A stretch of 64,000 bases of DNA from Phaeosaccion multiseriatum (lineage: Eukaryota; Protista; Ochrophyta, other classes), in assembly GCA_965112735.1 (NCBI GenBank), contig OZ218957.1:1798001-1862000 (forward strand), read 5' to 3'. The translations under genes and the position numbers were made by a program. The notes under the pieces are model-generated. The model worked only from the letters and a program-made list of their open reading frames with translations. It was not told the DNA's origin and did not search any database. Below are positions 1 to 43,300 of this stretch, piece after piece. The first letter of the stretch is position 1, and each line of letters starts with the position of its first letter.

Positions 1-1771
1 GATTGAAGTCCCTGCCAAAGTGGATCTTCTTGAGCGAGACAGGCAGGTCCAGAGGGAGGTTAAAGTCAGCCCCCATCCGCACCTCCTCCACACCGCAAGG
101 AAGGACCATGTGCTGATTGAAGCGAGAGTCCTCACAAAATCTGATCTTCTTGAGCGAGGCAGGCAGGTCCAGAGGGAAGTTAAAGTCAGCCCCCATCACC
201 ACCACCTCCTCCACACCGCAAGGAAGGACCACGCGCTGATTGAAGACCCTGCCAAAGTGGATCTTCTTGAGCGAGACAGGCAGGTCCAGAGGGAGGTTAA
301 AGTCAGCCCCCATCACCACCTCCTCCACGCCGCAAGGAAGGACCACGTGCTGATTGAAGTCCCTGCCAAAGTGGATCTTCTTGAGCGAGGCAGGCAGGTC
401 CAGAGGGAGGTTAAAGTAATGCCCCATCACCACCTCCTCCACGCCGCAAGGAAGGACCACGTGCTGATTGAAGAACCGGCTAAAGTAGATCTTCTTGAGC
501 GAGGCAGGCAGGTCCAGAGGGAGGTTAAAGGAAACCCCCATCACCACCTCCTCCACGCCGCAAGGAAGGACCACGTGCTGATTGAAGTGATGACCAAAAT
601 CGATATACTTGAGCGAGGCAGGCAGGTCCAGAGGGAGGTTAAAGAACCATCCCATGGCCACCTCCTCCACGCCGCAAGGAAGCACCACGTGCTGATTGAA
701 CTTCTGGCCAAAGTGGATAAACTTGAGCGAGGCAGGCAGGTCCAGAGGGAGGTTAAAGTTATCCCCCATCACCATCTCCTCCACGCCGCAAGGAAGGACC
801 ACGTGCTGATTGAAGCTCTGGGCAAAGATGATCTTCTTGAGCGAGGCAGGCAGGTCCAGAGGGAGGTTGTAACCCCCCATCCGCACCTCCTCTACACCAC
901 CAGGAAGGACCACGTGCTGATTGAAGTGATACCCAAAGCGTATCTTCTTGATCGAGGCAGGGAGGTCCAGAGGGAGGTTAAAGTCCCACCCCATCTCCAC
1001 CTCCTCTACACCACAAGGAAGGACCACGTGCTGATTGAAGTCCCTGCCAAAGTTGATCTTCTTCAACGAGGCAGGAAGCAAGATCCTCCCATTGAAAGCG
1101 CCTCCAAAGGACACTTCTTCCAATGTGTTGGGCAGAGATACATCGGCCTCATCGAAATAGTCGGAGAAGACCACACGCTTGACTGATGCGGGCAACTGCG
1201 CCAGCGCCTTCGCAACGAGAGCCTTGTCTGCAGATTTCATGCCTTCGTCTCGCGAATCATGGGCGTGACTGAACGCGGCGGCTAAGACAGCCTTGTCTGC
1301 AGGTTTCATGCCTTCGCATCGCGGGTGTCCGTCTCCGTATCTGAAGCCAAGCCGCACAGCCGCCACACGAAATGACCCTGGTACAGATTCACCGCGCTGT
1401 TCTTTCACCTGCTCTTCCTGATTAGCACGCATACCCCCAGACCTTCGGCCCCCCTCCAGGACCGATCTTGTCGCCTCACTCGCAGCAGTAGCACCTGCTC
1501 CCTCGGGAAAGGAAGATGCTGCAGAACAACACCTCTTCTCTTCAGCCTTCTGTTGCCGGAGCAAACTCAGGAAACGACGCTGCACACACTCAGGCATGGC
1601 GCCGCTGATCACCAGAGTGCGGGAGGTGCCCTCGTCAACCTCCCTACACACTCCCCACAGAGCTGTGTCCGAAGTGAAGCTGGCCACAGTTCTCAGGGCC
1701 GCTCTCGCCGCGCTATGCTCAGGCAGTGCCCCACGAGACTGCCCATCCTCACTCACGCCTCCCTTATCCAT
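1..1771 (-). CDS. FNIP-repeat (LRR-like) protein, paralog A, possible degenerate N-terminal F-box; 3' end beyond window start
   Basis: ATG at 1771 (MDKGGVSEDGQSRG...), open to position 1 by manual translation. Repeats LPASLKKIxFGxxFNQHVV / LPCGVEEVxMGxxFNLPLD from ~1195 to 1. N-terminus nearly identical to 15212..16903. Not in the ORF track because no stop lies inside the window. Confidence 0.9.
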   Translation of the reverse strand, partial: MDKGGVSEDGQSRGALPEHSAARAALRTVASFTSDTALWGVCREVDEGTSRTLVISGAMPECVQRRFLSLLRQQKAEEKRCCSAASSFPEGAGATAASEATRSVLEGGRRSGGMRANQEEQVKEQRGESVPGSFRVAAVRLGFRYGDGHPRCEGMKPADKAVLAAAFSHAHDSRDEGMKSADKALVAKALAQLPASVKRVVFSDYFDEADVSLPNTLEEVSFGGAFNGRILLPASLKKINFGRDFNQHVVLPCGVEEVEMGWDFNLPLDLPASIKKIRFGYHFNQHVVLPGGVEEVRMGGYNLPLDLPASLKKIIFAQSFNQHVVLPCGVEEMVMGDNFNLPLDLPASLKFIHFGQKFNQHVVLPCGVEEVAMGWFFNLPLDLPASLKYIDFGHHFNQHVVLPCGVEEVVMGVSFNLPLDLPASLKKIYFSRFFNQHVVLPCGVEEVVMGHYFNLPLDLPASLKKIHFGRDFNQHVVLPCGVEEVVMGADFNLPLDLPVSLKKIHFGRVFNQRVVLPCGVEEVVVMGADFNFPLDLPASLKKIRFCEDSRFNQHMVLPCGVEEVRMGADFNLPLDLPVSLKKIHFGRDFN

Positions 1772-2231
1772 GCTTCCCTCTGTTTCTCTTTCTTAACGTG
1801 TGTGTGTGGGCGCTACTACTGCGGTCAGTGGTAAGAGAAGAGAGGAAGGGTTTGAAAACCCCGGTTCAGAGCTACAAGCTGGTCCCACCAAGAGACCGAA
1901 AAATCTTCAGACGCGTCGACAGAAGAATCACATGGAGGGAAAAACTAGGGCTATGCTTTCGTTCGTCTTGACGCCCTCTATCGATTGACGCTGTGCCCTT
2001 CTCACAAGTCTGTTGTCATCGCGCTCTAAATCAGCGCCAGTTTTCCTCGATTTTCCCGAAATCTCCGTTTTTTTCGAACTTATACCCCCCAATCACAATG
2101 GGAAACGGCGTGGTCATACAGTACTCCTCAGCATGAGGCCAAGAGAGAAAACCGCCTGAAAATCGACTCGAATCCCGCATCGGAATCACGAGATGAAAAA
2201 AATTTCCCTCTTTTCGTGGGACCAGCTTGTA

Positions 2232-2962
2232 ACCGGCCAGGGGGAAGACTTTATTGACTTAATAACTGGTTTTTCGAGCAGAGCGAGTTTACGAGTCGAT
2301 AGGTCGAAAAACGTATTTTCAAGCAGCGGAGGATAGACAGATGGAAAGGAGTAAAGGGACGTGTAGAAGGCAGGGCATGCGCACGCCGGCTGGCGCAACG
2401 GCCCAACGGCCCTACGTAGCACACGCACGAGGCCCACCGACGGGGGTTACAAGGAGTCAGGAATTAGCAGGAATTAGCAATCACTACTGTAAAAGAGGAG
2501 GCGACGCGAGTACGGCGTCGCAAGAGTCGCAGCAAGTGTCGAAGAGCTCAGCGCGGTGAGAAGGACAGCGAAGGGAGCAGCCCAGCAGTCCACCGCACGG
2601 AAGGAGACGGCAGCGACAGCAAAAGTTTCCCCACCCGCCCGGCCCGGGGGGACGAGTGGGATTATCGGGAATCCAACGGGGTGGATGGGAGTAAGGGCGA
2701 GGCAGACGCGTCTGCCCGCCCTGCTTTGGCACCCCCTGGAAATCGCATGTACCCCCCTTTATACAAATAAACAAGCATTGAGTATTAGTTTGACTGAACG
2801 AGAGGGTGGTCGAGGTAAAGGCATATAGGTAGTATTAGGTGTCGGGACACAGCGGACTGAAAAGGAATCACCTAAGAAACTGAAAGTGTGAAAGTGTGTG
2901 TGACCGGCCAGGGGGAGACTTTATTGACTTAATAGGAATCACCTAAGAAACTGAAAGTGTGA

Positions 2963-2973
<11 letters not shown>
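2232..2973. repeat. Tandem copies of a ~65-bp element ACCGGCCAGGGGGAGACTTTATTGACTTAATAGGAATCACCTAAGAAACTGAAAGTGTG; the first copy is split by ~600 bp
   Basis: Left half 2232-2264, right half 2863-2902, intact copy 2903-~2970, variant copy 3364-3414, truncated copy 24622-24686 in the opposite orientation. Confidence 0.75.
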
Positions 2974-3010
<37 letters not shown>

Positions 3011-3363
3011 GTGTCGCTGTGTCTCCGGGGCCCTCGAGGGGCCGGTTACTCCCCCTCTAGGGCGGGGAGGGGGAGTGCGGGACCGGCTCCGCGGTTGAGC
3101 CGACCCAGGAAGGCGCGCTCCCGCTCCGAGAGCCACATCTGGTGGCTGCAGCTGACGAGGCGGCGAAGTCTTGTCAGGACGTGGCCCTTGGTGGTGGAGG
3201 AGCCAGTGCGGCCAGTGCGGGTGACCACGTGCTCGGCGAGTGCGTGCAGGAGCGATTGCGCCTGTGCGCCGAGTCGGCCGTGGGTCTCGATGGCGAAGGT
3301 GGAGAGGCGAGCACGCTCTCGGTCGTAGGTGCCCCTGTAGTGTCGCTCCTTGCGGGTCTCGCT
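2963..3363 (-). mobile_element. 5'-truncated CRE/R2-type non-LTR retrotransposon remnant: restriction-like endonuclease C-terminus, short 3' UTR and (CA)n tract
   Basis: Minus frame 3363->3046 reads SETRKERHYRGTYDRERARLSTFAIETHGRLGAQAQSLLHALAEH..., matching the RLE K-x-x-x-Y ... F-A-x-E-T-x-G-x-L-G signature. (CA)n follows at ~2963-3008. Confidence 0.7.
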
Positions 3364-3927
3364 ACCGGCCAGGGGAGGCTCCTTTCACTTTATTGACTTA
3401 GTAGGAATCACCTATAGGAAGGAAAGGAAGGAATTAGGGAGGCGAAGAGGCTCTTCTTCGCAAAGTAATGCTGCTGTGGTTCTGCCCTGCAACAGCTGTC
3501 GACCACCGCCGCACCCCCCTCTGCGGCCGATCACCCTCTGCTAACGTAAAACCCAACCCAGCCTCTGCTCCTCTGCTTCCCCTCTAACTATCCAAGTATG
3601 TAGGTCTTCATCGACTCGCCAGGCTACACCTCCTCCGAGCACCTCCAGCTGCTATCTCCCTCACCTTGGCTGGGCACCATCTGTCGGCAGGGGAGAGAGG
3701 GTCGGAGGGAGGCAAAAGAGGAGCAAGCAACCAAAGAAGAGGAGGGGGCGTGAGACAGGATATACAGAGCCCGGTACTGTATGCAATGCTCCCGATGTCC
3801 GAGCACTGAGCTGACTGCCCTCAACCGCACTACAACCATGCCTCGTGCGATTTGATCGTGATTTCCACGTGACGTGATCCTCATTTCATCTAATTTTATG
3901 CATCAAAAGTCATTTGATTGAGAGAGA

Positions 3928-4730
3928 TTAGGTGATCAGGTCCGCCGCTCGCATAAAGGCGGCCTTGAGGGTCATCACCCCCGCACTCAGCTTCTGACCA
4001 GCGACCACCGCTACCTCCTCCTCCTCCTCCTCCTCCTCCTCCTCCTCCTCCTCCTCCTCCTCCTCCTCCTCCTCCTCCTCCTCCTCCTCCTCCTCCTCCT
4101 GCCCCTCCTCGCCCCCCTCTGCTGCCATACCACGATGGTTCCCCAACCCTGATCCCAACCCTGATCCTGACCCTGACCCTCCTGTTGCAAGCTTTGCTGC
4201 TGCTGCTCCTCCTCCTCCTCCTCCGCCTCCTCCTCCACCTCCACCTCCTCCGCCTCCTCCGCCTCCTCCGCCTCGTCCACCCAGGGATGGCAGCGGGCCC
4301 GAAGACCGATACATGCTGCTACTATTTGGGGGGGGGGGGCTAGAATGTTGGGTTTGTTGGCGTTGATGTTGTAGCCTTTGAAGTCGCTTCACAACCTTCT
4401 CCCACCCCTCCCTACTCCGACACTGCAGGGTCCACCGGCGCCGCTTCAGCGTTGTCTTGGCAAAGAGGGCCAAGAGAGCCCCGCTGCCTCCTCCTCCACC
4501 CCCTCCCCGTCCTCCTCCTTCTTCTCCTCCTCCACCCTCCTCACTAGCTTCACCCCCTCCTCCTCCACCTCCTCCTCCCTCCCCTCTTAGCACGATAGTC
4601 ACGAGGAGCTCACGACCAGTGTTTCCTCTTCCTCGTCCTCTTCCTCTTCCCTTTCCACTGCCCCTACTCGTGCTGACCGTCCCCGTTCCAAGCCTCAGCC
4701 CGCCCGAGCCTCGACTCCTCTCTATGATGG

Positions 4731-4764
<34 letters not shown>

Positions 4765-5188
4765 GCTGCTGTTGCTGGACGACCAACTTGTTCTGATGGC
4801 CCTGCTGTTGCTACTACCTCTGCCACCGCCCTCGCCCTCCTCCTCGTCGTCCTCATTCTCCTCCTCCTCGTCGTCGTCCACCTGCACACCCACAACATCA
4901 CACAGGTCGGCGCTGTCTACCAGGCGAAGCCATGGAGCAGCAGCAAGACCACCTCCATCCCATCGACTGCCACTTCCCCCCCTGGAGAGGTCCGCATCAC
5001 AGAGTAGGATGCGGGTGGATGTGATGACCAACGCGCGAGGCGCCAGCAGCCACGGCCGCTGCTTCCATCTCTGAAAGAGCAGCTGATAAAGACTCACCCC
5101 CACATCCTCCTCTGTGCGTACAGACGGACACAACGGTGGATGTGGATGATACCCTTGCCCTTGCCCTTGTCCCTGTCCCTGCCCTCCT

Positions 5189-5223
<35 letters not shown>

Positions 5224-6490
5224 TCGGGCAATGGCATCGAGGGTGTCGTCATCCTCATTGCCGATGGACAGCGTCAAGTGGGCGGCGATGGCCTCAAAGT
5301 GTCGGGTCAGAGTGAGTGTCCTTGAGCGGTCTCGGGTCAGCACCGCCAAGGCTGCTCCTTGGCTGCTGCAAACGCAACAGCCCCCCTTGCGCCCTTGTCC
5401 TCCTCCTCTCCTCGCGCGGCTGCCGTTGACGCCGTTAACGCCGCTGACGAGGCCGTTGATGCCGTTAACGCTGGCCTCATAGGAGGACAAAGATGACCCC
5501 CAAGACCCGTGTCGCGTGTTGCTCGTGGTCCGGGAGAAGTAGGCCTGAGTCATCGCGCCATTCGCCCTACTGGTAGGGGAGACAGAGGAGATAGAGGAGG
5601 AAGAGGAGGAGGAGGGTGCCGCTGTACCACCAACTGCTGTACCGCCATTTGCTGTACCACCAATTGCTACACGAGCTGCCGTCATGTCGGGCAGCACCTC
5701 TATGCGCAGCAACTGCAACTCAAACCCCAACACTAGTGCGCCAACTCGCCACAAGGGCCAGCGACGGAGCACCAACGGCCGAGGGGCGTCGCCAAAGGTC
5801 ACTCTCCGCCGCCGTGAAGACGACGGCGCCGTTGACTGCCACCCGCCGGCTTCTCGGCCTTTACTTTCGCTACTGCTGCTGTTGCTGCTGCTTGTGCTAA
5901 TGAGGTTCTTCTCGTCCATAACGTACAGACAAAGGTCCGTGAGCACGAGCACCACAGCCCGCTCCCCGCACACGTACTCCTGCTGTCGCTGCTGCTGTAT
6001 CACCAACTGCTGCCCCAGGGTGTGAGTCCGTTCTCTGGCATCTCCATGCACATCCCTTCGCAGCACGGGCACAAAGAGACAGAGTCCACACGGGGCCTGC
6101 CGCGAGGAGCCTCGGCCTGAATTACAGCAGCAGCAGACAGCGCCCTCTTCTTCCTCCCCTCCTCCTCCTCCTCCTCCTCCTCCACCACCACCACCACCAC
6201 CACCATCACCACCATCACCACGTCCTCCTCCTCCTCCTCCTCCTCCTCCTCCTCTCGGCTTGCAAGGAAGCACTGTGTCTCTGAACACGTGGAGCACCGT
6301 CTCGGAAGCAGAGGGCATCCCGTTCCGACACTCACACGCCGAAGGGACGGTCAAGTACGGGGCCCTGCCCAAGCGCGGAGTGAAGACTTGCTCGCGGAAG
6401 TATCTTTGCGTGGAGTTGTGGTTGTGGTGGGTGGGTGTGTGTGTGTAGGTGGGTGTGTGTGGGTGGGTGGGGGGTGAGTGGGTGGAATGG

Positions 6491-6532
<42 letters not shown>

Positions 6533-8293
6533 TTGTGCGCGTGTGGGTGTGCGCGTGTACTTGAAGAATGAGCCACCCCTCCCCCCCAACACCAACACCG
6601 GAGCCGTAGCACCAACTTCTCTTCTATGGACCTCTCAAGTAGAACCACACCATACACAAAATGCAACTCACAAATAAAGTCTCCGGGGGCCACCCATACA
6701 CACTGGTAATACACTAACCGTAGCAGGTCGTCGCCAACAGCCGTCGTTGCCAGGTCGGGATTGCCAACGTATTGACGTTTGCTGCCATCTTCACCTCCTC
6801 CCCCTCGTCGTCGTCCCACTCCTCCTGGCCCCGTTTCTCCTCCTGGTCGTCGTCCTCCTCCGCCTCCTTCTGCTCCTACCTCTGCTGCCGTATCACCAAC
6901 TGCTGAAGGGAGTGCCCCCCCCGGTCCACCCGTCAGCCGAACCTCCCTCCTCACGCCCTCTCGCGCCTCTGCTGCCCCCCCACCCCCACCAACACCTCCG
7001 CTACCGCCAGTCGTGTCCCCTGTACCACCAACACGAGCACCAACACCTGTATCTCTTCCACCTGTCCTGCTGCCCCCCGTCCCGCGGCTCCCGTTGACGC
7101 CGCCTCCAAAGTACTCTCGAATTCGCCTCTGTTGCAACAGCTCTTGCTCCCTCCGCTCATCGCCGCTCAATTGCAGCCGCACCGGCCCCGATTGGCGCCT
7201 GCGTCTCTGCCTCTGTATCACCAACTGCTGCTCCTGCTGCTCCCCGTCGTCCACAATGCTTCCGCTTCTGTCGGGGTAGGGGTGGGAAGAAGCTGGCCGA
7301 GACGATGTGGCTACGGCTCTGGTTGTGGCCGCTGCTCTCAGCGAGGGCGGGGGAGGGAGGGGGGCGATTCCTGTGCTGTTGCGACGGCGGCGATCCGGGG
7401 GGCTCTGTGACTGCCCCTGTACCACCAACGGCTGTTGTTGCGGCTGCTGCGTGCTGGACTCCACCGCGCCACCATTCACATCACCCCCACCCCAACCCCC
7501 ACCACCACCACCAGCAGCAGTAGCAGCGGTTGGTGATACAGCAGTTGGCGATACATCCGTGGGTGATACAACGGCAGCCTGTTGTGCCTTGTTATTGGCG
7601 CTCTTGTCCCTCTCCGACGCATCCAGGAGCTCAGCGAAGGTCTTCCTGCGTGTCCCAGTCTCCGTCTGCTGCCATCGCCGCTGATCCTTCTCCCTCTCCG
7701 TCCTCATCTCCTTCTTCGTCTCTCTCTCTGTCTGTGAGGTGAACAAGGACCGAGCTCTCGCCCCCAAAGTCTCTGCCATGCCGAGTGATTCACCTTTCGC
7801 CGCCGAAGAGGCCGCTGAATCACCACCTGCTGTTGCTGCCGTACTCACGTCCGCGACCGGGTTCCCCCCTCTCTTCGAGAGCGGGTCTAATGAAGCTGCT
7901 GCTGCCGTTCCTCCGCTCTCCCCCTCCTCCTCGTTCTTTTCTTCCTCATTCTTCTTTTGCTCCACCTGCTCCTCCTCCTGGCCCTGCTCCTCCTCCTGGT
8001 CCTGCTCCTCTTCCTGCTGCTGCTGCTCCTCCTCCTCCTCCTGCTCCTCCTGCTCCTCCTCCTCCTCATCCTCCCCCTCCTCCTCCTCCTCGATTCCCTT
8101 CGCATCATCCAGCGACTCTTGGTCTTCTCTCTCAATACTACTTCCACTATCTCTACTACCACCATTTGTACTTGTACTACTAGCGTGTCCTTCGTCGTCA
8201 TCCTCATCCCGCAGCAACAAGTCTGGAGTTCCCTCCCCCCCCTTCGGTGAGAGCAAACGCCTCGATCCGAGCAACGCTACCTCCACATCATCA

Positions 8294-8324
<31 letters not shown>

Positions 8325-8964
8325 GGGACGTCTCTCCCTCCCCATCCGCAGTGACACCATCCTGTGGGAAGGGCGAGGAGGCCCTCCTCCTCACACCCCC
8401 ACCGCGCAAACCAAGCACAAGCTCCTCCATGCAATCGGAATCGGCCTCTTCCTCCTCCTCTTCCTCCTCCTCCTCTGCGAGCCCCCACCTCGGATGCCCT
8501 CCCTGTATCACCAACACGTGCTGCTGCAGCTTACTGGCACCCTCCACCTCTGCACCTCCACCTGCACCGCCTCCAGCCGCTGTTGTTTCACCAACTGCTT
8601 CGGATGCGGTCGCCGCCAGCACCGCTGCTGCTGCTGCTGCTGCTGCTACATCACCAGCTGCTTCACCCCCCCCCATGTTCTCTATACTCGCCAAAGCCGA
8701 ATTGCGCCGCCTCCGTCTCCTACTCGTCCCTTGCCATGGCCCTTGCTCCGCCCCTTCCCTGCCCCTACCCCGTCCATTCTCCTGTCCCCGTCTCCCTCCT
8801 TCCTCTTCCCCTTCTCCTCCGTCTTCACCCCCCTTCCCCTCCTTCGAGGCGGTCTCCGACAACCTCCAGCGAGAGACACTTGTGTCCTCGCCGCCCTCAT
8901 CGCGTCCACTCGTGGTGCTCACTCGACTCTCTCTACCCACTCTGCCGACACTGGCCATACCACT

Positions 8965-9000
<36 letters not shown>

Positions 9001-10153
9001 AGAGGAGGAAGCCTGAGACGGTCTCCGCCTCGGCCGTTCTCCGTCTCCTCCTTCTTCGCCTCTTCTGTGCTGCTGCTGCTCCTGCCGCTGCTGCTGCTGT
9101 ATCACCAACTGCCGCTGCTGTTGGTTCATCGCCGCAGCTCCAAAACTGCGATCTGTGAGCACCTTCCGCTCCTTCAGTGATGGATACCTCCCGTCCAGTG
9201 CAAGGCCACTCATCCCACTCACTCCACTCACACCTCCCTCAACCCCGTCATCTCCCTCGCCCCCCCAGAACCAGTCGTTGCTCCTCCTCCTCCCTCCCCT
9301 CCTCTGCCTCAAGACATCGCCCCCACCCCCTTCCCCATCTGCAGCTCCTCCCCCGGTGCCCCAGTAGTCGCCGCCAGCCTGTGTCCTCCCAACACCCAAC
9401 AGCTCAAGTATGGTCACACGGTAGCTCTCGCCGAGGGCTTCCGCCACGGGGTTGCTGCGTAGCACGATGCCCGATAAGCAAGGCAACTTCGACAGGCGAG
9501 ATATATCCTCTTGCCGTGCGAGTTGGTTGTCCGAAAGGTCGAGGTACCTGTGAGGGTGAGGGATGGATGTTGCAGATCGATTTTTTTGGTGTAACGTAAG
9601 GGATCGATACAGGAGTAAGCAAGGTCTAACATCCTGCAACTGAAACTATGCCTGGGGGAGTAAAAGACCAGCTGAAACTGAACCTGTATCTGACAAGAGG
9701 ACTAGACCCGAACCTCTCCTACCACCACTTCCTCTCTTCGGGGCGCAAATAGTTTGAATGTCGTAGCTTAGTATAGTCTTCACACACGAGTCTGCAAGGA
9801 GTAGACCGGTATATACCGCTCCTACGCTCTGTATCACTCTCCTGTGCATATTTATATAGAGTTAGTGACAAAGAGGAGGCCACGTGACACTGAAACTGTG
9901 GCTGCTGCAACCCACACAAACCACTGCAACTGCAAAAAAATGTAAACCCAAATTACCTGAGAGAATAGAGCTTGTCCAGGCCGAGCGTGCTTTGAAGTGC
10001 ATTGTGCCGCAGGGAGAGACGCACGAGGTTACCAAGCACTTGGTGGATGCCTTTCGGGGGAGGTGCATGCGGGGTGTGATCAAGGGCATGTGAGTGGTGG
10101 TGGTGTGGGTGAGTGGATGGGAGCCGGGGGTGGGGTGCGTGTGTGGTGCGTGC

Positions 10154-10239
<86 letters not shown>

Positions 10240-12352
10240 GCGTGTGTGTGTGCGTGCATGTGTGTGTCTGTGCGTGCGCGTGTGTGTGTACTGATTCCTT
10301 CAATCGCGTACACTCATACACCAACATGGAGTACATCTATACGTACCTTTGGCGGAGGAGATGCGATTGAAGCTAAGGTCCAGGCTGGTGAGGGCTGAGC
10401 AGTCCTGCAAGTACGCCACCCTCGAGATGGAGTTGTGAGGCAGCTCCACGCAGCGCACGTGGGGCAGGAGACGTAGGGCTCCATCCAGGCGCTTTAGGCC
10501 GCACGAGCTGGCTCGAAACAGATCTAACTTGCTCCAATGCAGCGCCGGGATGCGGCCCGTTCCCAGCAGGCTCTCCTCTCCTTGTTCTTCTTGTTCTTCT
10601 CCCCCTCCTGCTCCTTCTTCTCCCCTTCCTCCTTCCTTCTCCTCCTCCTCCTCCTCCTCATCCACCCCTTCCTTCTTCTCCTCCTCCCCTGCTCTCTCCG
10701 CTGCTGAGGCGAGAGGTTCAGGCCCTAACAAGGCCTGCAAGGACGGGAGATGCGCCTCTTCAAAGCTTAGGGCCTTGAGCTGCAGCCTAAGGGCAAACAA
10801 GCGGGACACATACTCGGGCCCAATGCGCTGTAGAGAGAGCACCTGGGTACACATACATGAACACGTATATATATACATACCACATACACAAACACGCGCG
10901 CACACGCACGGAACGAGGCTCCGATGTTAGGTTAAACGGGTGTATGAACCGACGGATGACACAAGTGTGGATTGGCATACGCCTTCTCTCCCCCCTCCTC
11001 CCCCTTCTCGGTCGCTTGAATCCCCAAGCCCCCAATCCACACACAAGCACATTTCCATGATCATAATGAACTAAGACTGCACCACACCACACCACACCAT
11101 CACAGTTGGTGATACACCACGTCACAGATACACCACATCCCACCTGCAGGCTCGGAAACACGCTCAAGTCAACGTAATGAGGACTGCTGTGTCCCCCATT
11201 GTGCGCCACTCTGAGGCTGGTCATGGCCATGACCTGCTGGTAAAGGTTCCCCACCAGTTGCCGCTCGTACTTCATCTGCGTCGCCTCTGCACCACCACCC
11301 GCGGCGGAGAAGGAGGAGCGGGACTGCTGATGCTCTTGTTGTATCACCAACTGCTGCTGCTGGGGGCCTTGGAGGTGCTGCTTAAGCTTGCGGGCGAGGA
11401 CGTACACCTCTCGTGGGGTGAGCGTCGCAGGCTCGGTATTGTTCATACGCCCTCCATGACCGTACAACCGCAACGAGTCTTGGAGGACGGATGCCTGCCC
11501 CACTCTTGAAGCTTCCCATCCTTCTCCTCCTGCTCCTCGAGCCCCGGCATCGTTTGGCCCTTCCCCTCCGAGGCTGCCCCCCACCCGTCCTCCCTCTTCT
11601 TCCGTCGTGCGCCTTCTCCGAAGGCCGTTGTCTACATCGCTGCTGCTATTATCGCTGCCACTTCCACTCTTAGGAAAGTAAGATTGGCCGCTTAGGAGAC
11701 TGCCACTGCCGCTCCTCCATGCTCCTTCAACACCCGACCCCTCACGGCCCCTTGTCGAAGCTCCTCGGTTTGTGGGACTCTGACTGGCGTCGGGGCTGCC
11801 GGTGACGCTTGCTGTGAGTCCACCTAGGCTCCACAAGCGAGAGCCTCCAAAGTCGGAGGGAGAGAAACCAAAGCTACTGCGTCGTCGTCCACTGCCGATT
11901 GCCCCCCCGCCGAGCAGTTGTTGCAGACTCTTGATGCGAAAGAAGCCTTTGCCGTCGTCGGCTTCCCTCTCTCGGTTTTCTTCCCCTAGCCCTGCCCTTG
12001 CTCTCTGCCCTGGGATAGCCGGTCTTCTTGCGCCAGCAAGAGTCCTCGTACTGCTTCGGACCTCCAGAGGAGTCGCGGCCTCCTCCTCTGCTCTGGAGGT
12101 GAGCAGATTGCTGAGAATTCCCTCAAGCACGACGTTGCTGCTGTACAAACTGACGCTCCTGTCAGCCCTACTGCCAGTGCCAGTGCTTACATCTTCGGGC
12201 CATTGCTCTCTTGCACGTCCACCGCTGACAAACCGCCTTTCTCCCTGCTCCTCGCTGTGTCGAGGCCCGTCGACGCCGACAATCCCGACCTTGTTCGTCT
12301 CGCTGCTGTCGCTTCGCAGGAAGACGTCTCCAATCGACCATTCCTCCTCCAT
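3928..12352 (-). CDS. STK11IP/nischarin-like LRR protein with long low-complexity middle and C-terminal PH-like regions (5 exons)
   Basis: Exons 12352-11144, 10842-10347, 10050-9957, 9547-6719, 6403-3928 with GT-AG sites and consistent phases. LRR: WSKLDLFRASSCGLKRLDGALRLLPHVRCVELPHNSI...LDLSFNRI...LGNLVRLSLRHNAL...LDKLYSLRYLDLSDNQL...LRSNPV. C-terminal VVLVLTDLCLYV and ALVITSTRILLC strands. Confidence 0.8.
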
Positions 12353-12702
12353 CCCGTGCCCCTCGCCTTTCTTCTCCCTCGTTAACGGCAGATGGCATTC
12401 ATAATTGTTGTCTCGGGTCTCTTTTTTGAGCTCTCTCTGGTTGGTGTCCTAATTAAGGTAAGGCCGTCTGACCCATCGACTCCCTCCCAATCGACAATAC
12501 CTCTTCGGCCCTATCTGTCTCGAGAAGCTCATGGTTAGGGTCATTAGCTAGGGGAGCGGGAGAATGTTACATAATGTACGGCCGATCCCGATCATCGCGG
12601 GGTGAGTCAGGGTAGCGTGTTGGTCGTATTCTTCTGGGGTCACAGCTGGTGTTGTGGGGAGTAGAGAGAAAAAACTGAGAAAGAGAGAAGGAGCAGAGAA
12701 AG

Positions 12703-13764
12703 ATGGAGGCAGCACCAAACTCTCTGCCTAAGCTCTCCTTTAAGAGCTCGGATCTCTCGTCTATCACCCTGCAGTGGAGTGGGGCAAATCCAGAATGCAG
12801 CTATCGAGTAGAGTATCTCTGTGCAGATGCGGAGCAACCGGTACGCGACACTCAAGCCCCATTTTTCTGCTCCCTGAGGCACCTCCACTTCATCCTCCCT
12901 GCTTCATACACCATCTCAAAGGCCATACACTGAACACGGAGAGCAGGGATAAGATGATCGAATCATGTCTTCCGTGTGCGAAGACTCATTTGTCCCCCGC
13001 CCCGCCCCTTTCCACCAGGACTGGAGTAAGGCAAAGTCCTTGGCGACGAGCAGTGGAAAGGACACTCACGAGATCACCTTGGTAGATCTGGAGGCGTCGA
13101 CATCTTACCTGTGCCGGTAAGCGTTAACACTAGCAAGCTGGCACATGAAGCTGGCGACACACTGCACGTCCGCTCACCACCATGTTCATTCTGCTCAGGC
13201 TGTATGCGGTGCCAGGGGATGGTAGCAAGGAGCTCGGGCCCACAAGAGAAGTGGTGTTCGATACCGAAGGTGAGGAGCAAGACAGGGAGGGAGGGAGGGA
13301 GGGAGGGAGGGAGGGACGTGAGAAGGGTAGGGAAGGGTGGAGCCATGGAGCGACGGAAGAGGAAGGAGGAACGGACGGGGAGGAAGAGCGAATAGGTCAG
13401 CCCCTTTTGTCTCGTCAGGGTCGCATTTTTACCCTCCTCCTCCACCTCCCACGCCTCACCAGACACGTACCCAATACACACACGCACACACGCTCCGCTC
13501 CACCCCTCTCGCCCCCTTCACCCTCACCGACCACGGACCTACATGGGGTATGGTTCTTGCGGCCCACTCTCTCTCTCTCCCTGTCTCTCTCTCTCTCGCC
13601 TCTCTCCTCTCTCCTCTCTCCTCCCCCCTCTCCCTCTCTCTGCCTCCCTCTCCCTCCCCCTCTCCCTCTCTTTGCCTCCCTCTCCCTCTCCCTCTCTCTC
13701 TCATCGCCTTCCTTCAGTCGTCTCCTGCACGCCGGATAAGCGGAGTTGCTGTGTCGTGAGCTAG
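12703..13764 (+). CDS. Small (117 aa) fibronectin type III domain protein with C-terminal CaaX box (CCVVS)
   Basis: Exons 12703-12840, 13019-13116, 13199-13269, 13718-13764 splice in frame (354 nt): ...SSITLQWS...SYRVEY...DWSKA...ITLVDLEASTSYLCRLYAV...VVFDTEVVSCTPDKRSCCVVS*. Confidence 0.8.
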
Positions 13765-15211
13765 GGAAGGAGGGAGAGGGAGGCAGGAGACTGACAGAAC
13801 GCTCTTCTCTCTCTCTCTCCCGATCTCCCGATCTCCCGACTTGTGACTGCTGCCACTGCTGCCGCGGGTGCCGTCTCTCCCTTCCCTCCCCTTCTCCTTG
13901 CTTGGGATGGTCCTTGATGGGCTCTGGGCATGTGGGGTAGACACACCTCATTGGCCCCCTTCATTCATTCACTCACTCACTCGCATGCTCGCCGTGGATG
14001 GTTGCAAAAACACCTTCGCTCTCAGTGAACAAGTGCTTCAAGCAGAGGAAGGGCAGTGGCGGCGGCAGCGGCAGCGGCAGCAGGAGCAGCAGCAGCAAGC
14101 GGCGGTAGGGCGTGCATGAGGGAGGCAAGGAAGGCATGGAGGGAGGGAGGGAGGGAGGGAGGGAGGGAGGCGTGGCGAGACCGTGCCAGATGGGACGGAG
14201 GGTTGTTGCAAGTCATCCCTAGAAGCAGTGATTTAATTGCGCTTTTGAGCGGCTGCCACGAGAGGGAGTGGGCGGGTACCACGTGCGGCGAGGAGTGTGC
14301 TGGCTCAGATGGCAGTCAAAGGCTCGGATGGCAGTCAAGGGCTTAGATGCAGTCAAGTGAGGATAAGTATGGGCCTCAGCCGCGCCATTCCACCAGAGCA
14401 GGGGGGGGGGATGCGACAGCGCATCGAAGCAGCCGAGGACTAGAGACGCAATCACAGCGCTGACTGTGCACACACACGCACATGCGCACGCGCACGCGCA
14501 TGCCCACAGCACAGCGGGAGCGTCCGCGTCAGCGTCAGCATGAGCATCAGCCAGTACTTGAGAAGCGACCATTTGAGTTTCGGCTTTCGAATGGTGCCCC
14601 GGCTGCTACCACTTTGGATAGCGGGGACTAATTTCGCTGGTCGGAGGGAGGAAAGGGCAGGGCAGGCAGGCAGCAGGAATGCAGGCAGCAGGAACGCAGG
14701 CAGGCAGGCAGCAAGGGAATCAGAAGGGAAGCTTACGGTTAGGACCAACTGCCCCTGCTGCGTGCAGATCTACCCCAGCAGCCTAGGGTGTGTCATCACG
14801 AGTAGCGATGATGTTTGTCGGCCGCTAAGGACGATTAGGGAGGTATGGCCTGGCGAGTCAGCAGCAGCGCAGCCTGTGCAGAGTAGGGCAACGGACAGGT
14901 GGAGGGTGGGGGTGCTGACCTACATACTTGGACAGTTAGAGGGCAAGCAGAGGAGCAGAGGCTGGGTTGGTTTTACGGTAGCAGGGTGATCGGCCGCAGA
15001 GGGGGGTGCGGCGGTGGTCGACAGCTGTTGCAGGGCAGAACCACAGCAGCATTACTTTGCGAAGAAGAGCCTCTTTGCCTCCCTTATGCGTGATCTACTC
15101 AAGCTCTGGCACCGTTGAGACGTTACTTTTAGACGACCATAGATGGCACTTAATGGTATATTTTGAGCCGTTCTTTTTGAAAAATAGCCCTCACAGTGTT
15201 AGTAAGAAAAC

Positions 15212-16903
15212 ATGGATATGGGAGGCTTGAGTGAGGATGGGCAGTCTCGTGGGGCACTGCCTGAGCACAGAGCGGCGAGAGCGGCCCTGAGAACTGTGGC
15301 CAGCTTCACCTCGGACACAGCTCTGTGGGGAGTGTGTAGGGAGGTTGACGAGGGCACCTCCCGCACTCTGGTGATCAGCGGCGCCATGCCTGAGTGTGTG
15401 CAGCGTCGCTTCCTGAGTTTGCTCCGGCAACAGAAGGCTGAAGAGAAGAGGTGTTGTTCTGCAGCATCTTCCTTTTCCGAGGGAGCAGGTGCTACTGCTG
15501 CGAGTGAGGCGACAAGATCGGTCCTGGAGGGGGGCCGAAGGTCTGGGGGTATGCGTGCGAAGCAGGAAGAGCAGGTGAAAGAACAGCGCGGTGAATCTGT
15601 ACCAAGGTCATTTCGTGTGGCGGCTGTGCGGCTTGGCTTCAGATACGGAATCTCGCGAGACGAAGGCATGAAATCTGCAGACAAGGCTCTCGTTGCGAAG
15701 GCGCTGGCGCAGTTGCCCGCATCAGTCAAGCGTGTGGTCTTCTCCGAATTTTTCGATGATGCCAATGTAACTCTGCCCAACACCGTGAAAGAAGTGTCCT
15801 TTGGACACGCTTTCAATGGGAGGATCTTGCTTCCTGCCTCGTTGAAGAAGATCAAGTTTGGCAGGGCTTTCAATCAGCACGTGGTCCTTCCTTGTGGTGT
15901 GGAGGAGGTGGTGGTGATGGGGGCTGACTTTAACCTCCCTCTGGTGCTGCCTGCTTCGCTCAAGAAGATACGCTTTGGCACAGAATTCAATCAGCACGTG
16001 GTCCTTCCTGGTGGTGTGGAGGAGGTGCGGGGTTACAACCTCCCTCTGGACCTGCCTGCCTCGCTCAAGAAGATCCACCTTGGCGAGTACTTCAATCAGC
16101 ACGTGGTCCTTCCTTGCGGTGTAGAGGAGGTGGTGATGGGATGGCACTTTAACGTCCCTCTGGACCTCCCTGCCTCGCTCAAGAAGATCCACTTTGGCCG
16201 GAACTTCAATCAGCACGTGGTCCTTCCTTGCGGCGTGGAGGAGGTGGTGATGGGGCTTGACTTTAACCTCCCTCTGGACCTGCCTGCCTCGCTCAAGAAG
16301 ATCAGATTTCATGAGTACTCTCGCTTCAATCAGCACGTGGTCCTTCCTTGCGGCGTGGAGGAGGTGGTGATGGGCGGTTACTTTAACCTCCCTCTGGACC
16401 TGCCTGCCTCGCTCAAGAAGATCCACTTTGGCAAGAAGTTCAATCAGCACGTGGTCCTTCCTTGCGGCGTGGAGGAGGTGGAAATGGGATGGTTCTTTAA
16501 CCTCCCACTGGACCTGCCTGCCTCGCTCAAGAAGATCGATTTTGGGCATCACTTCAATCAGCACGTGGTCCTTCCTTGCGGCGTGGAGGTGGTGGTGATG
16601 GGGGCTGACTTTAACTTCCCTCTGGACCTCCCTTCCTCGCTGAAGTGGATCAGATTTTGTGAGGACTCTCGCTTCAATCAGCACGTGGTCCTTCCTTGCG
16701 GCGTGGAGGAGGTGGTGATGGGGGCTGACTTTAACCTCCCTCTGGACCTCCCTGCTTCCCTGCGGATACTGGAACTGGGTCGACGTTACACATGTCCTTT
16801 GAGGACATTGCCTGCTGGCCTGCTAGAGCTTGTGGTTGGGAGGGACTGCCCGCTGCCTGCAGATCTACCCGAGGAGCTTGAGGTGTTTCATCACGTGGAA
16901 TGA
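15212..16903 (+). CDS. FNIP-repeat (LRR-like) protein, paralog B, 563 aa, intronless, possible degenerate F-box
   Basis: About 20 repeats of 19-21 aa (LPASLKKIxFGxxFNQHVV / LPCGVEEVVMGxxFNLPLD) at ~15713-16880. N-terminal LPEHR...VASF...ALWGVCREV resembles an F-box. Confidence 0.92.
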   Translation: MDMGGLSEDGQSRGALPEHRAARAALRTVASFTSDTALWGVCREVDEGTSRTLVISGAMPECVQRRFLSLLRQQKAEEKRCCSAASSFSEGAGATAASEATRSVLEGGRRSGGMRAKQEEQVKEQRGESVPRSFRVAAVRLGFRYGISRDEGMKSADKALVAKALAQLPASVKRVVFSEFFDDANVTLPNTVKEVSFGHAFNGRILLPASLKKIKFGRAFNQHVVLPCGVEEVVVMGADFNLPLVLPASLKKIRFGTEFNQHVVLPGGVEEVRGYNLPLDLPASLKKIHLGEYFNQHVVLPCGVEEVVMGWHFNVPLDLPASLKKIHFGRNFNQHVVLPCGVEEVVMGLDFNLPLDLPASLKKIRFHEYSRFNQHVVLPCGVEEVVMGGYFNLPLDLPASLKKIHFGKKFNQHVVLPCGVEEVEMGWFFNLPLDLPASLKKIDFGHHFNQHVVLPCGVEVVVMGADFNFPLDLPSSLKWIRFCEDSRFNQHVVLPCGVEEVVMGADFNLPLDLPASLRILELGRRYTCPLRTLPAGLLELVVGRDCPLPADLPEELEVFHHVE

Positions 16904-40345: not shown

Positions 40346-43300
40346 ATGGTGCTTGCGTGCGAGAGGACGGGACAGCAGATGGGACAGCAGAATCAGCCAA
40401 ATTCATCTTGTGTGATGAGGGGCGGCACAGCGAGCAATAAGTACACAGCAGCAGCAGAGAGAGGAGGAGAGGAGGTTCACGAGGCGGCGGCGGTGGGCGA
40501 CATTAGGGCAGTGCTTTCCTTCCTGGAGAAGGGCGGGAGCGTGGATCAGAGAGTCCGTTTCGGCACCCGCAGCCTGCTTCATGAGGCGGTTTCCCACGAT
40601 CAAGCCGACGTGGTCAAGCTGCTCTTGGAGCGGGGCGCAGATGGTGAGTGCCGTAGACTCCCCCATATTGAGCTCTCACTGCTACTCAACGATACGCGCT
40701 TCTCGCCCAGTCTTTCTATCTACCCCCCTGCTTGCTTCTGAGCCTGATGCAAGGGCTCACAGAGGCTAAGGTACAGACAGTCCTGCTTGCTTCTGCGCCT
40801 GATGTAAGGGCTCACAGAGGCTAAGACACAGAGACTGTCCCTGCTCCACCTGCTCCTCCTCCTCGATCCTCCTCCCCCTCCCTGCAGCCAATCTCTTGGA
40901 AAAAGGCGCCACTACCCCGCTACACCTTGCCGCCAAGCACGGCCATGACCAAGTGCTGGCCCTCCTCCTGAGAAGTAGAACCCCGATCGGCGCTGGACAA
41001 GGCAGCAGCAGCAGCACCACCACCAACAACAACAACAGCAGCAGCAGTCATTTAGGCAGCACCAGCAGGACCCAGGGCGGTGTCATCCATGTGTGTGCTG
41101 CAGACGCCCTGCTTAATACTCCGCTACACTTTGCGGCATCTCCAGCGGCGGTGTCGATGCTCCTGGCCTGTGGAGCCGATCCTTCCCAGTGTAACGGCCA
41201 AGGCCTTACGCCAGAACACACGGCACAGGGGAGAGAGGCGAGGGGCGCCATTCGAGACCGTCTAGCGCGCCGGAAGGAGGAACAGGAACAAGTACAACGA
41301 CGACTGCGGGAGGAGGAGGAGGAGGAGGAGGAGGAGGAGGAGGGGGGGAGGGGGGATCTTGAGGAGGAAGAGGAGGACGGGCGACGGTACACCAGCAGTA
41401 GCAGTAGCAGTAGCAGCGACAGTAGCAGCAGCAGTAGCAGCAACAGCAACAGCAGCAGCAAGAACAGCAGCAGCAGCAGCAGCAGCAGCGGCGGCGACAG
41501 CAAACGCCGTGTCCCGGCCAGATCGAGGGGAGTAAGCACCGCCACCACCGTGCTGCACCACCATCACTACTACCACGACACCAGGCAGCAGCAGTTGCTC
41601 ATACAGCGGCAGAAGCAGCTGGTGATGCAGCAACAGGAGGATGAGCAGAAGCAGCAGGCCCAGCAGGAGCAACAGGCAGTAGATGATATGAAGGAGCAGT
41701 TGGGCGAAGGAAAAGTACGCACGGGCAAGAGCCACAGCCACAGCCAGAACGAGAAAACGATCACCCACCGCCACCCCTTAGGGGCAGGTCGAGGGCATGG
41801 GCACTCCTTCTCCTCCTCCGCCAGTGAGGTTGGAGGAGGAAGGGAGGGCAAGGGCCGAAGGGCTGGCGACTGCGCGGACGAGGAGGGTGTGGAAACGGAG
41901 GGGGAGGTAAGAAGGCAGGAGAAACACAAGGCAACGAGCAGGGGGGCGACACCAACACGTCAGCATCGTCATCGGCATCATCGGCACCGTAGGCTCTCGT
42001 CAGCGTTGGCCCTGACCCACGCCATGGACAGGGTGCGAGAGCAGGCCGAGAAACACCTCACTGCGTTGCGTAGGAAAGAAACGAAGCGGTTACAGAAGCC
42101 GTTACAGTCTGTGTTACACAAGAGTAAGAACGCGGAGGGGGAGGAGGAGGAGGAGGAGGAGGCGGAAGGGGCAGAGTCTATGTCTTCGGAAGAGTTGTCG
42201 TCGACAACGCATTCGGATGAGCTGCTGAGCAGGAGTACAAGCGAGGAGGAGGAAGGGGGGGGAGAGGAGGAGGAGAGGCGGCAAGTGCTGGGGCAGGACA
42301 AGCCGAGATGGCAGTGGATGGAGGAAGGAGCGGGCAAGAGAGTGGAGAGCACAAGGAAGGGGCCCGAGGAGCAACAGCAGCAGGAGGAGGAGGCGCCGCC
42401 TGTATCCGCCGAACCGCCTTCGGAGAGGAGGAGGCAAGCGAGAGGAAGAGGAAGTGGAGGAGGAGGAGGAGGAGGAGGAGGAGGAGGAGGAGGAGGAGGA
42501 GGAGGAGGAGCACGTGCGCTTGATGACAGCAACGTCGTGTTCTCCTCCAGGGGGAGGGTGGGCCTGGGCCGCTCCTCCCTCGTTCAGCAGCACGCCATCA
42601 AACGCACGGGATGGTGTGCGCAGAAGGAGCTACAGGAGCGGTGTGCCGGTCTGGAGGAGGAGCTGAGCGGTGTCAGAGGGGAGGCGGACAGGCTCCGAGC
42701 GGTGCTAAGAGAGGCCCTGCTGCAGCTAAGGGGGCTCAAGAAGCAGGAGGGGGGAGAGGGCACGACGAGCAGGAGGAGGAGGAGGAGAAGGAGAAGGCCT
42801 CCTGTGATGATGGAGGCGGAGGGGCAGCAGCAGCAGCAGGAGGAGGAGGAGGAGGAGGAGGAGGAGGAGGAGGAGGAGGAGGAGGAGGAGGAAGAGGAGG
42901 GGGAGGAGGGGAGGAGGAGTGGTGGACCTTCGTGTGGGTCTCCTTCGAGGGAGGAAGAGGCTGTGCGAGCTGCAGAGACAGCCGTAAGAGAGGAGGAAGA
43001 GAGGGTTGAGGAGGAGCAGGGAAAGGTCCGCGAGAGTCGACGCTGGGGAGTGCTGTTCGACCTTCAGGCGGCCTATCGGGAGGATACGCGACGGCTGAAG
43101 GGGGAGGTGGGTAGGCTGGTTGGGGAGGTAGGACGACTGACGAGGGAGAGGGAGAGGGAGAGGGAGGTGGCGGCTTTGAAGGCATTGGGTGGCAATGAGG
43201 GGAGTGTACATGTGCAGCAGCAGCAGCAGGAGGAGGAGGAGGGTCAGGAGGAGGAAGAGGAAGGGATGGTGCGGGGGGGGAGAGAGCAGGAGGGTGGGGC

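Follow-up and report, generated by a model that had tools for sequence, protein, structure and literature searches.

Two inverted FNIP leucine-rich repeat genes of Phaeosaccion multiseriatum: apparently collinear modules in repeat arrays of different length

Background

How can two closely related leucine-rich repeat (LRR) genes carry the same distinctive repeat modules at different places in their arrays? The question is raised by a stretch of 64,000 nucleotides from the alga Phaeosaccion multiseriatum (assembly GCA_965112735.1, contig OZ218957.1, positions 1,798,001 to 1,862,000 of the forward strand), which is called the window below. It holds two FNIP/FGxxFN LRR genes, designated here A and B. 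A sequence-only reading of the window proposed that their arrays were reshuffled by recombination or gene conversion that drew on a shared pool of 57-bp cassettes, with the constant repeat framework serving as homology arms. The assembly of variable lymphocyte receptors (VLRs) in lampreys and the LRR shuffling of brown-algal ROCO genes were named as analogies. We compared the two arrays with each other and with the gene family to which they belong. The modules appear to be collinear in A and B, and the differences between the arrays are probably due to the ordinary dynamics of tandem repeats in a gene that was duplicated recently, with at most occasional short conversion.

Several known systems are relevant here. 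VLR assembly starts from a germline gene that is incomplete, and it depends on hundreds of donor cassettes next to that gene and on a somatic copy-choice process driven by AID-like deaminases. The ROCO and NB-ARC-TPR genes of brown algae are fast-evolving candidate receptors of the repeat type, in which each exon encodes one repeat and shuffling proceeds through introns and alternative splicing (PMC3341825, PMC11378527). In a paper on FNIP LRR structures, the repertoire of these proteins is likened to VLRs, with the remark that it is not somatic (PMC9525666). Finally, repeats of high internal conservation (HIC) in fungal NOD-like receptors (NLRs) are near-identical units with a few hypervariable positions. 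These units are readily gained, lost and shuffled, a turnover for which unequal crossing-over and ectopic inter-paralog conversion have been named as causes (PMC13449251; see also PMC4986451 and PMC1805685 for related papers on fungal HIC repeats).

Results

Both genes are uninterrupted open reading frames (ORFs) that run from the ATG through a conserved C-terminal cap. They have no introns, as the sequence-only reading had noted. Gene A lies on the minus strand. Its in-window part occupies positions 1..1771, with the ATG at 1771, and about 343 nt of the gene lie outside the window (reaching position -343 or so); the complete ORF, retrieved with its locus (L028), encodes 704 aa. Gene B (15212..16903, plus strand) is a complete ORF of 563 aa. 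The two genes stand head-to-head with 13.4 kb between their ATGs, in a GC-rich eukaryotic assembly of 67 Mb in 22 contigs.

Tandem Repeats Finder gives a period of 114 bp in both genes, which corresponds to two alternating 57-bp half-units. The type a half-unit reads LPASLKKIxFGxxFNQHVV (a long form of 21 aa has xxSxFN), and the type b half-unit reads LPCGVEEVxMGxxFNLPLD. There are 25 half-units in A and 19 in B, counting the two special first units and the C-terminal cap. Units of the same type within A and B are on average 85-89% identical in pairwise nucleotide comparisons, with Psim of 0.86-0.90. Variation is concentrated in a few codons, namely those for the two x residues in GxxFN, for the position two places ahead of its G, and for the final position of type b. 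Across 564 standard units of the family, entropy is 2.5-3.8 bits at positions a9, a12, a13, b9, b12 and b13; b19 has 1.8 bits, and the remaining positions have at most 1.24 bits, mostly below 1. In the same units the framework is nearly invariant down to the codon level, so much so that types a and b differ in the codon used for the same residue (Phe TTC versus TTT, Asn AAT versus AAC).

The distinctive modules listed by the sequence-only reading are all present in both genes at the relative places that it gave. MGWFFN followed by IDFGHHFN occupies A10-11 (569-682) and B14-15 (16457-16570). MGADFNFPLD followed by IRFCEDSRFN is found at A18-19 (104-226), at A22-23 (beyond the window) and at B16-17 (16571-16690). 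VEEVVVMGAD occurs in A18, A22 and B4 (15887-15946), and B16 has the version VEVVVMGAD. The short GGVEEVR..GYNLPLD unit, said to hold the same position in both arrays, is indeed unit 6 in either gene (A 854-907; B 16004-16051). The arrays had been described as differing in order and length. The difference in length is real; as to order, the multi-unit modules follow one another in the same sequence.

Three segments of the arrays correspond to each other. Units 1-6 of A (854..1195, minus strand), which carry rare silent markers, are positional orthologs of units 1-6 of B (15713..16051, plus strand). Units 9-11 of A (569..739, minus strand), which form the QK, WFF and HH module, are orthologous to B13-15 (KK, WFF and HH; 16400..16570, plus strand). 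The last segment of B, units 16-19 (16571..16903, plus strand), consists of the ADFNFPLD unit, the CEDSRFN unit, an AD unit and the C-terminal cap, and is orthologous to A22-25. Two blocks without a full counterpart separate these segments, and these two block differences, both in register, account for the different ordinal positions of the modules in the two genes. Between the first and second segments, the six half-units B7-B12 (16052-16399) stand opposite A7-A8 only. The net surplus of B is four half-units; which four is ambiguous, and B9-B12 (16166..16399, plus strand) lie within this region. Between the HH and ADFNFPLD-CEDSRFN modules, the ten half-units A12-A21 (1..568, minus strand, continuing 10 nt past the window start) have no counterpart in B. 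Inside this A-only block is a fresh internal duplication: A17-18 (167-283) and A21-22 show one mismatch in 117 nt, A17 differing from A21 at one site and A18 being identical to A22.

The same arrangement was recovered in several ways. A dot plot of rare k-mers gives one main chain, which joins A1-6 to B1-6, A9-11 to B13-15, A18-19 or A22-23 to B16-17, and A25 to B19. The best windows of three and four units line up along three diagonals, which are collinear and have offsets of 0, +4 and -6. In maximum-likelihood (ML) trees of units, A3/B3, A6/B6 and A23/B17 are paired with support of at least 99, and A10/B14 and A11/B15 with support of 83-85. Congruence of unit trees with array position is what the sequence-only reading had named as evidence against shuffling, and for the most part it is what we found. 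Among the units of A and B, a Cys codon TGT is exclusive to A4/B4 and ATA-CGC is exclusive to A5/B5. With these silent markers, positional orthology is settled also for units that differ in their hypervariable residues. A single unit provides thin information, and our claim is therefore based on multi-unit blocks and silent markers: judged from these, the multi-unit modules are collinear between A and B and not reshuffled. A young tandem pair of the same family (L006/L007), used as a control, has a collinear array with one additional repeat pair and scattered hypervariable changes.

In DNA the N-terminal regions of A and B share 97.6% identity (12 mismatches over 501 nt of alignment, an indel of 75 nt not counted), which bears out the near-identity noticed earlier, and the C-terminal caps are 96.7% identical. 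Homology of the two loci ends about 4 nt 5' of the ATG on one side and, on the other, about 55 nt 3' of the stop codon, with the exception of a 171-nt non-coding piece upstream (B copy 14917..15084, plus strand; A copy 3436-3606, inverted; 95.9% identical). In the N-terminal region, in units 1-3 and in the cap, synonymous divergence (pS) amounts to 0.03-0.05, equal to that of the non-coding piece. Such equal divergence of the flanks and the non-coding piece points to one recent duplication and gives no sign of a special homogenisation of the ends.

Within the arrays the framework and the hypervariable codons behave differently. In the nine pairs of positional orthologs, 16 of 426 framework sites differ (0.038), the same as in the flanks, versus 17 of the 84 hypervariable sites (0.20; Fisher p = 1.4e-6). 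The hypervariable change is concentrated in units 3-5 (14/30 sites); the other six pairs, which include both shared modules, have only 3/54.

A and B are paralogs, but they are one pair among many. A six-frame search of the genome gave 177 matches, clustered on contigs 1, 9, 13 and others, and from 62 loci we sampled 57 non-redundant ORFs besides A and B as a part of the family. Most intact ORFs of the sample have the same architecture as A and B. The two genes are by far the closest to each other, the next paralog having 67-68% protein identity, and in the six-frame search they are the sole members of the family on their contig. Family-wide comparison shows how conserved the framework is. Between B and any other paralog, the synonymous codon mismatch of the framework is flat at about 0.2, while that of the N-terminal region climbs from 0.23 to 0.61 with divergence. 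The repeats are thus held together across the family, either by homogenisation or by constraint.

A similar contrast is seen elsewhere in the genome. On contig 1, at 6.32-6.42 Mb, at least five paralogs (L024, L013, L044 and two genes of L048) are 97-98.7% identical over their first ~600 nt, and their repeat arrays are far more diverged than the N-terminal regions, as in A and B.

A shared cassette pool was not found. In a whole-genome pattern search, the CEDSR core (allowing at most 2 mismatches) and the WFF and VVV-AD cores (at most 1 mismatch each) were located inside A and B only. Most hypervariable cores of A and B are confined to one gene when the 57 sampled genes are considered. The B5 core has no exact second copy in the genome, and the A5 core recurs solely with a different glycine codon. 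Other paralogs were considered as donors of units and rejected: their nearest units are 2-8 nt away by virtue of the family-wide framework, but lack the hypervariable cores specific to A and B. A tblastn search with B detected no FNIP units outside A and B in the window and the 8 kb upstream of it (the best stray match had E of about 3). The orphan arrays that the pool idea had envisaged have apparent candidates elsewhere in the genome, in the form of family ORFs without the first unit or without the cap. These occur as adjacent halves, and so they look like ORFs split in two rather than cassette stores.

Two such split members were noted in particular, L061 (C12:8000-11700) and L032 (C13:2959501-2968150). 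In each the first unit and the cap belong to two adjoining ORFs, and these members are likely pseudogenes or frameshifted copies.

The protein encoded by gene B contains a single Pfam family, FNIP (PF05725; E=9.8e-49, 163.7 bits versus a cut-off of 21). Its N-terminal 167 aa match no Pfam family at E<=10; THUMP-like matches of this part in a protein-atlas feature search had low recognition and were disregarded. An AlphaFold2 model based on 31 family sequences has a mean predicted local distance difference test score (pLDDT) of 79, with 80-97 in the repeats, and each half-unit contributes a single short strand; in the N-terminal region the model has cap-like strand and helix elements with two disordered stretches. 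The best Foldseek matches of the model are the circular LRR protein CroV588 (6nyr, E=1e-19) and the FNIP LRR 7zal, both of Cafeteria roenbergensis virus (CroV), followed by YopM and Toll-like receptors. The predicted fold of the protein is thus an LRR solenoid. In FNIP LRRs of solved structure, variability is greatest at the two residues that stand between FG and FN, and these line the edge of the concave face (PMC9525666). Since the equivalent xx residues of A and B would lie at the same edge, the proteins are probably binding or recognition proteins.

Some other features of the locus were observed. The 75-nt indel is an insertion in A as compared with B; it lies at about 1256-1330 in the N-terminal region of A (1196..1771, minus strand; 192 aa). 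It looks as if the segment after it had been partly duplicated in tandem and the copy had since diverged (~80%; GMKPADKAVLAAA versus GMKSADKALVAKA). Two insertions of dispersed repeats 5' of A (2256..3363, strand unassigned), at 2256-2880 and 2909-3363, split the gene from the upstream piece shared with B. The second of them is an element of ~445 bp with about 30 copies listed on many contigs, of which some two dozen are 94-99% identical; it looks like a short non-autonomous mobile element that was recently active. The first is an older dispersed repeat of ~600 bp, whose copies, also on many contigs, are 80-88% identical. A motif of ~50 nt at 15113-15167, 45-100 nt 5' of the ATG of B, is present with ~90% identity at dozens of loci, including places ~140-200 nt 5' of FNIP genes of contig 1 (near C1:6331250, 6401891 and 6421930). 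It may serve as a common promoter element or mark one end of a mobile element. Two very long ORFs of low complexity, at 3928-9639 (minus strand, 1903 aa) and 40896-48548 (plus strand, 2550 aa), are probably pieces of spliced genes; the latter contains tandem repeats of 33 nt x21 (43536-44240) and 24 nt x19 (45970-46428).

Discussion

We consider it probable that A and B are recent duplicates of one FNIP-LRR gene whose arrays differ through ordinary tandem-repeat dynamics, with short conversion playing an occasional part at most. According to this explanation, one intronless FNIP/FGxxFN LRR gene, a member of a large lineage-specific family of a GC-rich alga, would have undergone a recent local inverted duplication that gave rise to A and B, now diverged by ~3-4%. 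The distinctive modules would have been inherited from the common ancestor with their relative order kept. Whole a/b repeat pairs would have been gained or lost in register after the duplication, which would have shifted the ordinal positions. B would thereby have acquired its surplus of four half-units between unit 6 and the QK/KK-WFF-HH module, and A its surplus of ten half-units between HH and ADFNFPLD-CEDSRFN, including the fresh internal duplication. This turnover likely proceeded by unequal crossing-over or by replication slippage, with 57/114-bp units of 85-89% DNA identity as the partners. The hypervariable codons have diverged at roughly five times the rate of the framework, likely by point substitution under diversifying selection. 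Conversion of a short tract from another unit of the A/B pair may have affected one or two units, for which we have candidates only.

The recombination or conversion invoked by the sequence-only reading survives here in a weak generic sense. The block indels, the A17-18/A21-22 copy and one or two off-position units all call for recombination, slippage or short conversion between units with an identical framework. Shuffling driven by a pool does not survive.

Several observations weigh against this explanation. A unit-level alignment of the arrays by dynamic programming shifts with the gap cost, and when the order of the interior units of B is permuted, the alignment cost is not significantly worse (p = 0.12-0.23, in an underpowered test). 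These results, as well as that of the recombination test described below, are weak because a single 57-nt unit holds few informative sites. The collinearity depends on a handful of distinctive blocks, and the comparison uses one assembled genome sequence only. A word-index protein search found just 8 distant public FNIP relatives (at most 35% identical), so that no outgroup is close enough to polarise the indels. Moreover, pS is raised to ~0.26-0.29 at units 5 and 8, on small numbers, which suggests partial overwriting. Some units lie off the collinear chain. In the ML tree, B4 clusters with A18/A22 (99/99), with which it shares an identical tract of 39 nt (GGT...VVV-AD...AAC), and it still has the TGT codon of unit 4. 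A4 groups with B8 (85/76). The nearest unit to A19 is B11, and A19 itself is a consensus 5' half joined to the core of A23/B17. A16 has the same 57 nt as B18. One or two of the off-position units (B4, A4/B8) may reflect short conversion, either within an array or between A and B.

Ongoing ectopic conversion between the inverted genes A and B and/or within the arrays, which would shift partial units and make some of the sharing younger than the duplication, is a possible but unlikely alternative. It would account for the well-supported link of B4 to A18/A22 with the unit-4 TGT kept, for the identity of A16 and B18, for the composite A19, for the A5 core being 1 nt away from the HH core of B15, and for the bimodal distribution of hypervariable change between units 3-5 and the other six pairs. 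However, the B4 link is built on a slippage-prone GTG insertion, on the commonest hypervariable pair (AD, in 7/19 type b units) and on a GGT codon ancestral in the family, and a donor in the same gene accounts for each of the cases equally well. A home-made pairwise homoplasy index (PHI) test on the 57-nt units was non-significant for both types a and b (p = 0.19-0.94), with low power and with units of odd length excluded, and the equal divergence of flanks and non-coding DNA gives no sign of homogenisation between A and B. It is improbable that a dedicated or locally targeted process diversifies the hypervariable codons, be it templated micro-conversion (~10-40 nt) or focused mutagenesis. Two findings bear on it: in units 3-5, whose orthology is fixed by the markers, the hypervariable codons are almost wholly replaced (14/30 sites) while the framework and the other hypervariable codons differ by ~4%, and the mismatch of framework codons is ~0.2 even between paralogs with N-terminal regions only ~36-70% identical.

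Assembly or rewriting of the arrays from a reservoir of 57-bp cassettes, with the framework as homology arms as in VLRs, seems very improbable, and the cassette-pool model is already largely refuted. Ample homology would be given by the identity of units (85-89% in DNA) together with the family-wide synonymous conservation of the framework, and a few units are indeed off position; yet the ORFs are complete, there are no orphan units in the window and the adjoining 8 kb, the order of modules is collinear, and the apparent orphan arrays look like split ORFs. The modules exist in A and B only, and for most cores none of the 57 sampled genes could have acted as donor; the B5 core lacks an exact second copy in the genome. 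We give equally little credence to the possibility that the arrays, or the order and number of their units, were mis-assembled from a repeat with a 114-bp period. Tandem arrays with units 85-100% identical are prone to such errors, and A18 and A22 are the same, but both arrays have an intact frame from the ATG to the conserved cap, each has several cores that are private in the sampled family, and the exact cores of A5 and B5 are single-copy genome-wide. The arrays are also just 1.0-1.4 kb long in an assembly of 22 contigs. Since A and B are inverted with 13 kb of unique sequence between them, they are not collapsed haplotypes.

If the differences did arise by such ordinary tandem-repeat dynamics, the best match among described behaviours is that of the HIC repeats of fungal NLRs. 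HIC is defined by Psim of at least 0.70, and classic cases have 80-100% identity; with Psim of 0.86-0.90, A and B are HIC genes at the level of repeats, yet without the NLR architecture. The likeness to the WD40 repeats of Podospora HNWD/het-e/het-d genes and to ANK and TPR repeats of this kind extends beyond internal conservation. A few hypervariable positions sit on an otherwise fixed repeat, and the number of repeats varies (25 versus 19 half-units), here between paralogs with 97% identical ends and not between alleles. The differences are that the repeats of A and B are FNIP/FGxxFN LRRs with alternating 19-aa a and b units, that Pfam detects no NACHT/NB-ARC or death-type N-terminal domain in B, and that exchange between the paralogs is only a candidate.

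In sequence family and fold, A and B are similar to the FNIP/FGxxFN LRRs of CroV, mavirus and Dictyostelium, with which they share PF05725 and the best fold matches (6nyr, 7zal). The units there are 21-22 aa long, in contrast to units of 19 aa in two subtypes (FGxxFNQ and MGxxFNLP) here, and, unlike the genes of CroV and mavirus, the A/B family is nuclear and belongs to an algal host. Neither analogy proposed earlier holds well. With VLRs of lampreys and hagfishes, A and B share variable residues placed in LRR modules on a conserved framework, whose homology could guide copying; however, both are complete germline ORFs with no arrays of promoter-less donor cassettes beside them in the window and the 8 kb upstream, and their modules are unique to these two genes. 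With the brown-algal ROCO and NB-ARC-TPR genes they share the stramenopile/algal setting and the character of fast-evolving candidate receptors of the repeat type, but they are intronless, which leaves no room for exon shuffling with one repeat to an exon and symmetric intron phases, and no ROC-COR or NB-ARC domain is found in B by Pfam.

Conclusions

The analysis reveals no new machine of diversification in this locus: a cassette reservoir is absent, and nothing points to programmed assembly. The A/B pair is instead a clean, datable case of fast remodelling in a highly homogeneous LRR array. At ~4% neutral divergence, 14 half-units are unaligned (6 net) and several binding-edge residues have been replaced. 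The HIC mode, best known in fungal NLRs, is thereby extended to an algal family of FNIP-type LRRs, and the pair supports the view of such families as diversifying recognition repertoires.

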